DNA from: Heteronotia binoei | Lineage: Eukaryota | DNA length: 64,000 nucleotides | Assembly: GCF_032191835.1 (NCBI RefSeq) | Contig: NC_083237.1 | Coordinates: 21,762,001 to 21,826,000 of the forward strand | Direction: 5' to 3' | Shown here: positions 6,001-9,271 of the stretch, piece by piece | Layout: each line of letters begins with the position of its first letter | Numbering within the stretch: the stretch's first letter is position 1 | Translations under genes and position numbers: made by a program | Notes under the pieces: generated by a model | What the model was told of the DNA's origin: nothing | Seen by the model: the letters and a program-made list of their open reading frames with translations, nothing else | The model's database searches: none

Positions 6001-8075
6001 AAACCACCCCATTAAAAATCTGCTGTGAAAATGTGATGCAACGTCACCCCAGAGTTGGAAACGACTGGTACTTGCACAGGGGACTAACGTTACCTTTTAG
6101 GGACTTCCTCTGCTGGTTCGTCAATAACATTAAAGTTACAACTTCTGAAAATCTCCTTAAGCTCCTTAAGAGTTGTGGGTGCTGAACCATTAAAGCCCCC
6201 CACCCCTGCTGAAAGACCCTTGTGAAGTGTCATCCTGTTTTCCTTCAGGTCCTGTGTTTCCCATAATTCCCTGCCAGACGCTTAGCACAGAGAGGGGAAG
6301 CTGCCTTGATAGCCAACTGTTCAGACATTAGAGTGCCAAAATGTAGCCGAGGAGGGGGAAGTCTCAAAGGAGGGGGTGGAGACAATGGGTGCAACAGGAC
6401 GTCATCCCATGGGTTGATAACTCAGTGCTTGCACAGGGGACTACCTTTTTACCTAGGACGATTTTGCTCTGACCTGGCTAGCTCATCCTTGTCAGATCTT
6501 GAAAGCTAAGCAGGGTGGCCCTGGTCAGTACCTGGATGGGAAATCACTGAGAAATTCCAGGGTCATGGCATGGAGGCAGGCAATAGCAAACCACCTCTAA
6601 ATATCTCTTGCCTTGAAAACCCTATGGAGTCACCATAAGTCGGCTGTGACATGACAGCGCTTTCCTCCACCACCACCGCACAGGAGAATTTTGGTGTTTT
6701 TCTCAGCCACCAAAATGTCTTGGCAAAGCATCCGTTTATGTATACGGAAGTGGGGGAAAGAAAGCTGTTCTGGTTGACTTGTGGATTCAAATCCCCCTTT
6801 TCTTTTAGAAAACACGCGCTAAACATCCCTTTGCTGCTCAGATTATGATGTCTGTTCTAAATTTCAGCGGTGGCCAAGGAGCCATTTTCTCTGAGTTTTC
6901 ACCACAGTGCTGCTGTGAAATGCCTAAACGGTTCCCAGCTGTGTAGGCTGAGCTGGTCACATAAGTCCTGATAGCAAAACCCTCACCTCTGATTGTGGCT
7001 AACGATGGTTTTGAGTTGAGGTTGGCCCCACTTGTGAGGTTGCAGGCTTTTAAATGTTTAAGCAACTCCATAGTCATGGCCCTAACGCATTTCCCTACTG
7101 GACTGAGAAGTACAAGATCGCTAATCCAGATGGATTTTGTGATGACTATCCCAGTATGCTGGACTCCTTAACTGATGCTTGTGACCAATGTTCCCTCTAA
7201 ACTGACTTAGTGTGAACTACCTCACAGTTTTGAAGCCTCTGGGCCACACATTTTTGTCTTAGCTCAGGAAGGCTGGACTCAAAGCAAACTAATTTATGCC
7301 GTAGCTCAAAACTTTAATGCCAGTAGCTCACAAAGTAGAATTTTTGCTCACGACTCTACAGTTTATAGGGAGCACTACATGTGACCAATGCTGCCTGTAA
7401 GCTGTGGAGTCTTGTGAGCAAAAACTCTACTTTGTGAGCTACTGGCATTAAAATTGTGAGCTGCTGCATAAATTAGTTTGCTCTGGGTCGTTTTTCCAGA
7501 GTTAAGAAAAAATGTGAGCTGGAGGCTAAAAAACTGAGCAAGCTCACACTAACTCAGCTTAGTGGGAATACTGCTTTCTAGAGTGAAGTGTCATTTCCTG
7601 GCCTCCCAAACTTCCTCCTCCCCATCTTCCAACCCCCCCAAGCCCCCTCGCCACATGTACCTTCTTTTCCTAATTCCTGCCGTTTTTCTAGGGTGACTCC
7701 GGAGGGCCCCTGTCCTGCCGCGTAGGCAATTCCTGGTTATTGGCCGGGGTTGTAAGCTGGGGAGATGCATGTGGGGCTGCCAACAGGCCTGGTGTCTATA
7801 CCCGCACCTCGAACTATGCTGCCTGGATTAAGGAGAACATTCCAGAGATGGAGTTCAGCCAATCAACTGTCAATATGGAGCCCGTGTCCGAGGAGGGCAT
7901 GTGCAATGATACAGCTGGCCAGCCAGGCCGTTATGATGAGTTTCAGCCTCTGCCAGGCGGGTTCCGCCCCATCACCCCTAAACCGCCTTCTGGGAACAGC
8001 GCCACCTCCTGGGCCTGCACTGCCACCCTGCCCCTTCTGTTTCTCCTCCTCCTGAGCCTCTGCTACCTCCTGTAA
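3086..8075 (+). CDS. PRSS8: Prostasin (GPI-anchored trypsin-like serine protease); exons 3086-3251, 4073-4344, 5451-5617, 7692-8075 (terminal exon A); 5' exons unresolved
   Basis: GT-AG exons with matching phases. Activation site LGR|ILGG; triad TAAHC / GDIAL / GDSGGP; S1 Asp in DACQG; prostasin-like LQQLEVP..CxCLY; hydrophobic C-terminal GPI signal. Tail-to-tail with KAT8 as in mammals. Confidence 0.9.
5013..5285 (+). mobile_element. tRNA-related SINE (Squam3-like)
   Basis: agccagtttggtgtagtggttaag head and ...gggtataaatccaatatcttct tail. Same family at 12800-13032, 14886-15156 and 21004-21276. Confidence 0.75.
5806..6097 (+). mobile_element. Sauria-type SINE
   Basis: tRNA-like head with B box (ggagttcgatcc), central aaggttgactcag...gagtacccagc, RTE-like ggggaaggcaatggcaaaccacc, and an ACCTTT tail. 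Confidence 0.8.
6470..6676 (+). mobile_element. 5S rRNA-derived SINE with RTE/Bov-B-like tail
   Basis: gtcagatcttgaaagctaagcagggtggccctggtcagtacctggatggga parallels the 5S internal control region and continues into ggcaatagcaaaccacctct. Confidence 0.7.
7186..7573. mobile_element. Two oppositely oriented hAT-like MITEs forming a ~390-bp inverted repeat
   Basis: Copy 1 at 7186-7377 has TSD CTTGTGAC/CATGTGAC. Copy 2 at 7386-7573 is its reverse complement, separated only by that 8-mer. Confidence 0.75.
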
Positions 8076-8986
8076 ATTGCACTTCAGATCTGGTCAGTAA
8101 ACCCACCTGCCCAATGATTGTATAGGGAAGAGGTCCCTTCTTTACTACCACTTCCACTCCATGTTCAATTGGATGGTTGCAATATTTCAGTCAGTCACAT
8201 CTCAAAATTTTGCTGTCTTCTGAAAGCAGGTGATTGTGTTGAATAGACTCTGGTCTTATTTTACAAGATGGCGGCCTGGTGCCTCAGCAGAAGCTTCCTC
8301 CAGGAAGTGAGGTTCAGTCCGATGTCTGCCTTGGGCCAGTGCCATCAGCTAGCCACCATCTAGGATAAACTGAGGTCCGCTTGATTCACATCTCACTTCA
8401 GTTGCTTCTAGCCGGTTAATTCGTTAACAGCCCGCTGCTTTTAAAAAGCTGTACTGTGGCTTGAGGCAATGGTGTAGGCCCAAAATGGCTGCCCCCCTGC
8501 AGCTTCACAGTGGAGAACAGGCTCCCGCCAAACTAGGAAATTCAGTTCACTCTCCTCTTTGTGCCAGTTCCTAGTTCTCATCCCTTCCCTTATCTCTGAA
8601 TTTGCTGTTTGGCATCCCATGCCAGTCTCCTGCCAGATCCTCACATAAATCCTTCAACCTTGATAGCTTGTGATTGACATTTCTGCCAGTTCCCTTCAAG
8701 CTGTCTGCAAGGTCAGACCTCCTGTGGCTGCCAGCCATGGCTCTTTGTGGAAATGATTTCATCTACCTACAAAACCGTCCCAGAGGCTTTTGTTGCTTCC
8801 TTCTAGTTCAGTCTAACACTGTCCACGCTGTTTCTACCACCATCACATTGTACTTTATCTGACCTCACTCCAGGGAATGAGCCGGGCCTTCCTCATTGAA
8901 CTCTGTGTTATTCTTCAGTTCCCAGCCCACCTCATGGGCAAGCCTAATGTTGATCTAAGTCATCCCCTCCCTGTGCCCTTTTCCAG

Positions 8987-9271
8987 GGTGACTCCGGGGG
9001 ACCCTTGTCTTGTCCTGTAAACCAAACTTGGCTGCTGGCTGGGGTAGTAAGCTGGGGGGATTCGTGTGGGCAGCCCAACCGTCCTGGCGTCTACACTCAA
9101 GTTTCATCCTATGTGGACTGGATTCAGAAAAATGTCCCAGAAGTGGCCACCACTGCGAAAGAAGAACCAGTCTCTGAGGAGGGAGTGTGTTCGACAGCAC
9201 CCTTTTTGCTCTTATCATCTTGGATTTTGCTAGCTTGCGTGGCCTTATTGCATGTCTTCGTGGATGGTTAA
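8987..9271 (+). CDS. PRSS8: Second intact copy of the PRSS8 terminal exon (exon B)
   Basis: TTCCAG acceptor, phase 0. Encodes [25 protein letters not shown]...EPVSEEGVC plus a hydrophobic tail, open for 94 codons to TAA. Confidence 0.85.

Follow-up and report, generated by a model that had tools for sequence, protein, structure and literature searches.

Tandem copies of the last prostasin exon in the gecko Heteronotia binoei, probably used as alternative last exons

The prostasin gene and its two last exons

We examined a window of 64 kb of the genome of the gecko Heteronotia binoei (64,000 nucleotides, nt; RefSeq assembly GCF_032191835.1, contig NC_083237.1, positions 21,762,001 to 21,826,000 of the forward strand), which begins within the gene encoding the serine protease prostasin (PRSS8). 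We found that the last coding exon of this gene is present as two tandem homologous copies, A and B, which share the same phase and have each their own acceptor and their own stop, and the combined evidence makes it probable that they serve as alternative last exons giving two isoforms. The signal peptide is encoded by exon 1, which precedes the window. RNA evidence was taken from contigs of two runs, labelled X1 and X2, and from raw reads of two others, X4 and X5; these run labels are distinct from those of the RefSeq isoforms X1-X4, named below. The features of the gene, given with lengths in amino acids (aa) where relevant, are as follows:

1755-1781, + strand: small coding exon (..VVEKTSTQN..) with phase-1 boundaries on both sides, identical to residues 19-27 of the database proteins P0228 and P0367
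3086-3251, + strand: exon with the activation site R/ILGG and His57 (TAAHC), 100% identical to residues 28-82 of P0228
4073-4344, + strand: exon with Asp102 (DIAL); RNA joint 4344>5451 in contigs of runs X1 and X2 and in 3 reads of run X4
5451-5617, + strand: exon ending in ..KKDACQ (Asp189, Cys191); phase-0 donor CAG/gtaagg common to both last exons
7692-8075, + strand: last exon A, from Ser195 to the C-terminus, 127 aa plus TAA; long proline-rich stalk, hydrophobic end
8096-8101, + strand: AGTAAA, 21 nt past the stop; may act as a weak poly(A) signal of exon-A mRNAs
8987-9271, + strand: last exon B, from Ser195 to the C-terminus, 94 aa plus TAA; almost no stalk, hydrophobic end
9445-9450 and 9854-9859, + strand: AATAAA past exon B, two copies; RNA contigs extend beyond both

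Exons A and B are open phase-0 frames in translation, each opening with GDSGGPLSC and each preceded by a strong polypyrimidine-AG acceptor. Their catalytic parts are identical at 37 of 52 positions, and both retain the SWG, NRPGVY and EPVSEEGxC motifs and a hydrophobic end; the sequons read NDT in A and NQT in B. Most of these properties had been reported in a first-pass annotation made from the sequence alone, and our reading of both translations agrees with it, apart from the gene's 5' side, where we corrected that the window starts inside the gene and added the small exon at 1755-1781. Positions 178-220 of the Pfam Trypsin profile are matched by both exons (E values of 6e-13 and 1.5e-14), and the profile matches every protease exon of the window that was searched. 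The set of S1-family protease residues is complete in the gene: TAAHC (His57), DIAL (Asp102), KKDAC (Asp189) and GDSGG (Ser195).

A second protease gene was considered and rejected. In a six-frame motif scan of the 64-kb window, which contains no runs of N, we recovered one upstream set of protease exons (TAAHC at 3232, DIAL at 4206, DACQ at 5606) and no further ones, whether between A and B or in the rest of the window, which bears out the earlier view that the two copies belong to one gene.

All protease exons of the window are 100% identical to the prostasin isoforms of H. binoei in RefSeq, where the cluster comprises four members of 356 aa (X1), 353 aa (X2), 323 aa (X3) and 320 aa (X4). 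Isoforms X1 and X2 terminate in exon A (the tail of X1 is identical to it), and X3 and X4 in exon B. The accessions are XP_060112658/9 (X1) and XP_060112662 (X3) for H. binoei and XP_054851355 (X2) for E. macularius. The full-length isoforms discussed here are these RefSeq database proteins, i.e., automatic (Gnomon) models without comment; the window exons were searched one by one, with no spliced model of our own. Isoforms X2 and X4 (P0368 and P0366) carry an alternative N-terminus, MRKEEESESSPPPEP.., in place of the signal peptide, encoded by an exon outside the window. Products of this kind would stay outside the secretory pathway, and their transcripts are probably non-functional.

The closest solved structure in PDB is that of human prostasin (3e-97), followed by tryptase (1e-66). 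A word search with exon B, whose length filter shut out full-length proteins, gave only short fragments that match the catalytic half. A search of representative sequences with exon B placed mostly multi-domain proteases in its top ranks; it also led to a full-length viper prostasin (P0188), and a search with the latter retrieved entries named "prostasin isoform X1/X2" in many reptiles. Downstream of the prostasin gene and on the opposite strand lies KAT8 (Tudor-knot and MYST domains) in eight of the nine other loci fetched, the exception being Alligator, where an immunoglobulin-domain gene on the + strand takes this position; the stretch at 11.7-20.5 kb of the window and the KAT8 region of Eublepharis are collinear. 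Because of the RefSeq identity, the best structural match to human prostasin and the KAT8 synteny, the gene is the PRSS8 orthologue of H. binoei, in line with the prostasin identity that the first-pass annotation had given. Downstream of KAT8, the minus strand carries two paralogous open reading frames of the C2H2 zinc-finger type (27085-28242, 385 aa; 36185-37240, 351 aa), which are near-identical over large stretches and indicate a local tandem duplication.

The two copies differ in what follows them. Canonical AATAAA hexamers were found 3' of B only (9445 and 9854), and A is followed just by the variant AGTAAA at 8096, in agreement with the earlier observation that AATAAA occurs only after B. 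Among Heteronotia, Eublepharis, Dermochelys and Alligator, AGTAAA follows A in Heteronotia only, and no poly(A) hexamer was found between A and B in the other three. Because of this absence, exon-A mRNAs may in general end 3' of B, so that the choice would be one between two acceptors within one composite last exon. At 120-500 nt before the acceptor of exon A we noted a nested inverted repeat (7186-7573) with inner arms at 7276-7360 and 7405-7489 (85 nt, 87% complementary) and outer arms at 7186-7231 and 7528-7573. Since it shows RNA depth in the thousands and many "opposite strands" joints, we place it in an abundant hairpin-forming (MITE-like, miniature inverted-repeat transposable element) family.

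Distribution, age and selection

We found that the exon pair is shared by several reptiles and reduced in others. The loci that carry B or a remnant of it are:

Eublepharis (locus L001): A 23794-24174, B 25119-25412; both intact, A then B
Dermochelys (L002): A 17508-17885, B 18370-18657; both intact, A then B
Alligator mississippiensis (L005): A 15537-15914, B 16393-16680; both intact, annotated coding range ends at the B stop
Zootoca vivipara (L009): B relic 23329-23490, interrupted by a stop, Ser195 motif lost
Anolis sagrei (L003): open frame limited to the tail half of B, 41321-41470 (..GGEECSVAPALLSAFWILLSSLFVAFTFGTV, then stop); annotated coding range ends exactly at its stop

Isoforms of the B type are, moreover, annotated in Sphaerodactylus, in the cordylid Hemicordylus and in five turtles. 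In Zootoca, which has one functional last exon, the relic follows at a distance of about 840 bp and has a stop in front of it; its identity to gecko B is about 35%, and both GDSGGP and NRPGVY are destroyed. In Anolis sagrei, a candidate phase-1 acceptor at 41358 is compatible with the phase-1 donor of the Asp102 exon, which suggests an isoform without the Ser195 half. No second copy of the last exon was found in Ahaetulla (a snake), the hoatzin, the platypus or Spea (a frog). The first-pass annotation, which knew of no such arrangement in mammalian PRSS8, agrees with the single last exon of the platypus, the one mammal checked.

The antiquity of the pair is supported by several comparisons. 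Between A and B, the proportion of synonymous sites that differ (pS) is 0.68 and the synonymous divergence (dS) about 1.8, i.e., saturated, at a non-synonymous divergence (dN) of 0.21 and a dN/dS of about 0.12; the duplication is therefore old, with both copies constrained since, and a recent duplication is rejected on the saturated dS. In a tree on 72 shared residues, the squamate B copies form a clade (support 100/99). The B tail of Hemicordylus aligns with those of turtles at z of 8-9, a score reached by none of 500 composition-preserving shuffles, and B tails score at chance against A-type ends. The most parsimonious and most likely history, judged from these sequences, is one duplication that predates the lepidosaur-turtle split, followed by several losses. 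The tail homology and the identical layout speak against separate duplications in squamates and turtles. The catalytic halves of A and B in Alligator differ by one non-synonymous and six synonymous changes in 50 codons and the tails are strongly different, a pattern that indicates gene conversion confined to the 5' half of the exon.

Orthologous comparison of the two geckos Heteronotia and Eublepharis, with non-synonymous and synonymous changes contrasted by Fisher's test, gave the following values:

Exon A: dN/dS 0.32 for the whole exon, 0.11 for the catalytic part, 0.47 for the tail; Fisher p 2.5e-5; nt identity 82%
Exon B: dN/dS 0.33 for the whole exon, 0.37 for the catalytic part, 0.30 for the tail; Fisher p 7e-4; nt identity 85.6%

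The spacer between A and B is 74% identical in the same comparison and has many indels, as against 85.6% for exon B. On this substitution pattern both exon copies are kept by purifying selection. The catalytic part of B evolves faster between the geckos than that of A. The earlier annotation had suggested dN/dS as a check; the whole-exon ratios are purifying and B is intact in other reptiles, with a decayed copy in Zootoca and a half-decayed one in Anolis. In RNA of other individuals, exon A carries two synonymous variants, and exon B three synonymous variants, one non-synonymous variant and an in-frame 9-nt indel at 9156/9157, where contigs of runs X1 and X2 add CGTGACTGT (V-T-V) after position 9156. 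The window allele is the shorter one; the longer allele matches the length of exon A there.

Transcripts, membrane tails and competing explanations

The contigs of runs X1 and X2 are informative on the splicing of the exon ending at 5617. The contig that joins 4073-4344 to 5451-5617 ends 11 nt beyond 5617, which is the last letter common to A and B: the first 11 letters of the two exons are identical (GGTGACTCCGG), after which one continues with A and the other with G. Unspliced read-through would diverge one letter after 5617, and the contig goes beyond that point. The exon-B contigs begin at 8984, three letters before the exon, and run past 9800-9900; the CAG at 8984-8986 is a suffix common to the exon ending at 5617 and to the intron. 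The first 30 letters of the exon-B contigs also belong to an unspliced contig (8287-9013 in run X1, 8238-9013 in run X2), an overlap that marks a 31-mer graph node having two predecessors. The depth of B (17.5 and 23.4 in runs X1 and X2, respectively) is close to what the upstream-exon contig (13.3 and 13.8) and the unspliced contig (6.2 and 8.4) yield when added. From topology and depth we infer that in these two runs most spliced mRNA proceeds to B and a minor branch to A.

The raw reads give other proportions. In run X5, depth is about 8-10 on exon A and, after scaling, about 1 on the 5' part of B; in run X4, both exons stand at about 1-2, with zero depth across 8129-8924. Past position 8128 or so, depth drops from 7.9 to 0.9 in run X5 and from 1.9 to 0 in run X4. 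Topology and depth, rather than displayed junction reads, thus indicate that both exons are expressed and that the A:B ratio varies among samples. Elsewhere in the gene, intronic repeats at 4945-5342 and 5741-6138 reach an RNA depth of about 3.8e5 in the contig runs and of hundreds in the raw reads; they look like elements of the SINE (short interspersed nuclear element) type transcribed from many genomic copies.

As to the proteins, the clearest distinction between the copies lies at their C-terminal ends. The cysteine after EEGx (C297 of P0367, C300 of P0228) is invariant in 40 of 40 aligned prostasins, from frog to mammals, and probably pairs, by elimination, with the extra cysteine of the 170-loop next to Cys168 (C197 in the gecko protein); if so disulfide-bonded, it would mark the point where the protease domain effectively ends. 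We measured the linker from this cysteine to the terminal hydrophobic run:

A-type linker: 30-40 residues, rich in proline; contains a sequon and a conserved W-x-R-P-I/L-x-P motif
B-type linker: 0-9 residues
Platypus linker: 13 residues
Frog linker: 10 residues

Both ends then consist of small residues and, after them, a hydrophobic stretch of 15-22; they lack a cytoplasmic tail and are putative attachment signals for glycosylphosphatidylinositol (GPI) or a membrane anchor. In AlphaFold models, the two RefSeq isoforms share the same full two-barrel protease fold, and the stretch of low confidence spans 303-336 in A, before the terminal helix, and only 289-304 in B. The secreted form of human prostasin arises when its C-terminal region is cut at an Arg-Pro bond; should the R-P of the A stalk correspond to this bond, A could be shed and B could not.

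The first-pass annotation had located the isoform difference around the 220-loop as well as in stalk length and anchor. The latter part stands, and the emphasis on the loop and the S1 pocket does not. The loop difference (DSCGQP in B, DACGAA in A) is real and restricted to the squamate B clade: A copies read CGA[A/S/P]NRPGVY, and all four squamate B copies differ there. The 202-206 hairpin also differs in squamate B, with a sequon in two geckos. Asp189, Gly216 and Gly226 are the same in A and B. Across the lineages compared, the difference that is kept in every one is that of the tail (stalk length and anchor signal), not that of the S1 pocket, because the catalytic parts of turtle A and B are similar and those of Alligator almost identical, and the tails differ. 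We therefore consider it unlikely that the exons serve mainly two catalytic specificities through the S1 and 220-loop walls, in the manner of the reactive-centre exons of insect serpins. Such a role would account for the 220-loop of the four squamate B copies, for the hairpin with its gecko sequon and for the higher catalytic dN/dS of B (0.37 vs 0.11), but it does not explain why the turtle copies stay close in their catalytic parts, why Alligator has a single non-synonymous change in 50 codons beside strongly different tails, or why the three pocket residues are unchanged.

A different objection holds that B is a duplicate without function or use, lying as a pseudo-exon in the 3' untranslated region (UTR) or downstream of A, and that the RefSeq B isoforms are splicing noise. 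We regard this as very improbable: B is open and keeps all catalytic and disulfide residues despite its saturated synonymous divergence from A, its orthologue dN/dS is 0.33 (p 7e-4) and it is better conserved than the spacer, it is intact in four reptile orders or families with a tail homologous between squamates and turtles, and in runs X1 and X2 it has most of the depth of the gene, with a contig topology that needs a spliced predecessor. The scarce depth on the 5' part of B in run X5, together with reads over the spacer, would nevertheless suit a dead copy, as would the position of the canonical AATAAA after B only, by which exon-A mRNAs could run through B, and the loss or degradation of B in Zootoca, Anolis, a snake and a bird; on the other side, the Zootoca relic illustrates how fast an unused copy decays under neutrality. 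Equally improbable is a start site in the A-B spacer from which B would be transcribed, wholly or partly, as a separate non-coding RNA or one for a C-terminal fragment. The contigs that run unspliced into B from 8287 and 8238, at zero depth on exon A and the other introns, would be its product, but stops close the frame upstream of 8987, so that the protease part could not be encoded, the depth of B requires a larger spliced input equal to the upstream-exon depth, selection acts on a coding frame that continues from the exon ending at 5617, and the RefSeq models link B to the upstream exons.

Several observations weigh against alternative use of A and B, or against its single old origin. Neither 5617>7692 nor 5617>8987 is among the 15 joints listed, a listing dominated by intronic repeats, and both junctions are deduced from contig ends, depth and the RefSeq models. 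Exon A has zero depth in the contigs of runs X1 and X2 (contigs drop rare forms), and raw-read depth is uneven, so that dips in such runs are not findings. An unspliced contig extends from 8238/8287 to 9013, with exon A and the other introns at zero in runs X1 and X2; it could stem from transcription that starts in the spacer, from intron retention with 3' bias or from a long 3' UTR. On the evolutionary side, turtle and alligator copies group by taxon in the catalytic-part tree, which taken alone is compatible with independent duplications, so that a single origin rests on tail and layout. The B tail of Alligator has no recognisable similarity to other B tails, with a tail dN/dS of 0.87. Finally, the loss or degradation of B in several lineages marks it as dispensable.

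Taking both sides together, we put at roughly three in four the probability that the last coding exon of prostasin was duplicated in tandem and that A and B act as alternative last exons giving two isoforms. The mutually exclusive use proposed in the first-pass annotation is thus supported by RefSeq models, contig topology, depth, selection and conservation, and its emphasis and its novelty with respect to databases are revised. Each copy carries Ser195, the C-terminal helix and the wall of the S1 pocket at 214-228, along with the EPVSEEGxC segment, presumably tethered by a disulfide, and a putative membrane-anchor signal. From the donor at 5617, splicing would go to A or to B, never to both, and the products would be full-length proteases of 356 and 323 aa, common up to Cys191. 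Their functional difference would be one of tether: A would sit on a stalk of about 30-40 residues and B would run within 0-9 residues into the hydrophobic signal, so that B would be held tight to the membrane, without the basic stalk site at which A could be clipped. The divergence confined to squamate B, in the 220-loop (QP at about 221A-222) and the 202-206 hairpin, may tune the S1 pocket secondarily. Exon choice is probably a matter of competition between the two acceptors, to which the weak AGTAAA after A may contribute in H. binoei.

We put forward only tentatively, as somewhat short of an even chance, the broader proposal that non-avian reptiles possess a splicing switch roughly as old as crown reptiles, tissue-dependent, between a stalked, clippable prostasin and a stalk-less, tethered one, which was lost independently in birds, snakes, iguanians and lacertids, with a single exon in the platypus (the only mammal checked) and the frog.

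Comparison with known systems

The A and B isoforms are already present in the automatic annotation of RefSeq and are thus not new to databases; the reptile isoforms there are exactly the two gecko products, without a statement of the tandem duplication, its age or the difference in tails. The consequence for annotation is accordingly small, as both forms are already modelled. In a literature search we found no published description of the reptile exon pair. What is added here is the age of the pair, its pattern of loss, the indication of gene conversion and an emphasis that now falls on the tether instead of the specificity pocket. The exon pair described here is real and old, and its probable alternative use represents an ordinary kind of alternative splicing, both alternative last exons and the alternative use of tandem exon duplicates being familiar types.

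Prostasin is a key membrane-anchored epithelial protease, a partner of matriptase that activates the epithelial sodium channel, and its anchoring and release contribute to its regulation in mammals. A natural pair of isoforms that differ mostly in stalk and anchor offers a ready comparison for the function of the tether. If the proposal of a reptilian splicing switch is true, the length of the tether, or the ease of shedding, would be under regulation in the signalling of the epithelial sodium channel and matriptase, and mammals would have fixed it at an intermediate value.

Mammalian prostasin (PRSS8/CAP1, a GPI-anchored epithelial serine protease) shares sequence orthology and KAT8 synteny with the gecko gene, and its last exon likewise runs from GDSGGP to a hydrophobic C-terminal signal, with the invariant cysteine after the C-terminal helix. 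Platypus, frog and bird have a single last exon, and the linkers of platypus and frog are intermediate (10-13 residues), whereas the gecko has two exons, of which A gives a long linker and B hardly any.

In insects, the serpin genes of Manduca (serpin-1) and Drosophila (Spn4) reportedly contain mutually exclusive duplicated exons for the reactive-centre loop. As in gecko prostasin, tandem copies of a decisive 3' exon are spliced onto a common body; yet the serpin copies, which can be many, change inhibitory specificity, whereas the gecko has two copies and the difference conserved between them is the membrane tail. The H, T and R variants of the C-terminus of acetylcholinesterase arise by alternative 3' splicing, with competition between splice sites and poly(A) sites (PMC5388418). 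They resemble the gecko case in that a shared catalytic body receives its different C-terminal anchoring peptides from alternative 3' exons (PMC5388418). The alternative exons of acetylcholinesterase are, however, neither mutual duplicates nor catalytic, whereas each gecko exon brings its own catalytic serine. The prostasin pair would be a clean case of a duplicated exon with a catalytic residue used as an alternative last exon, its catalytic half apparently converted and its tail half diverged.

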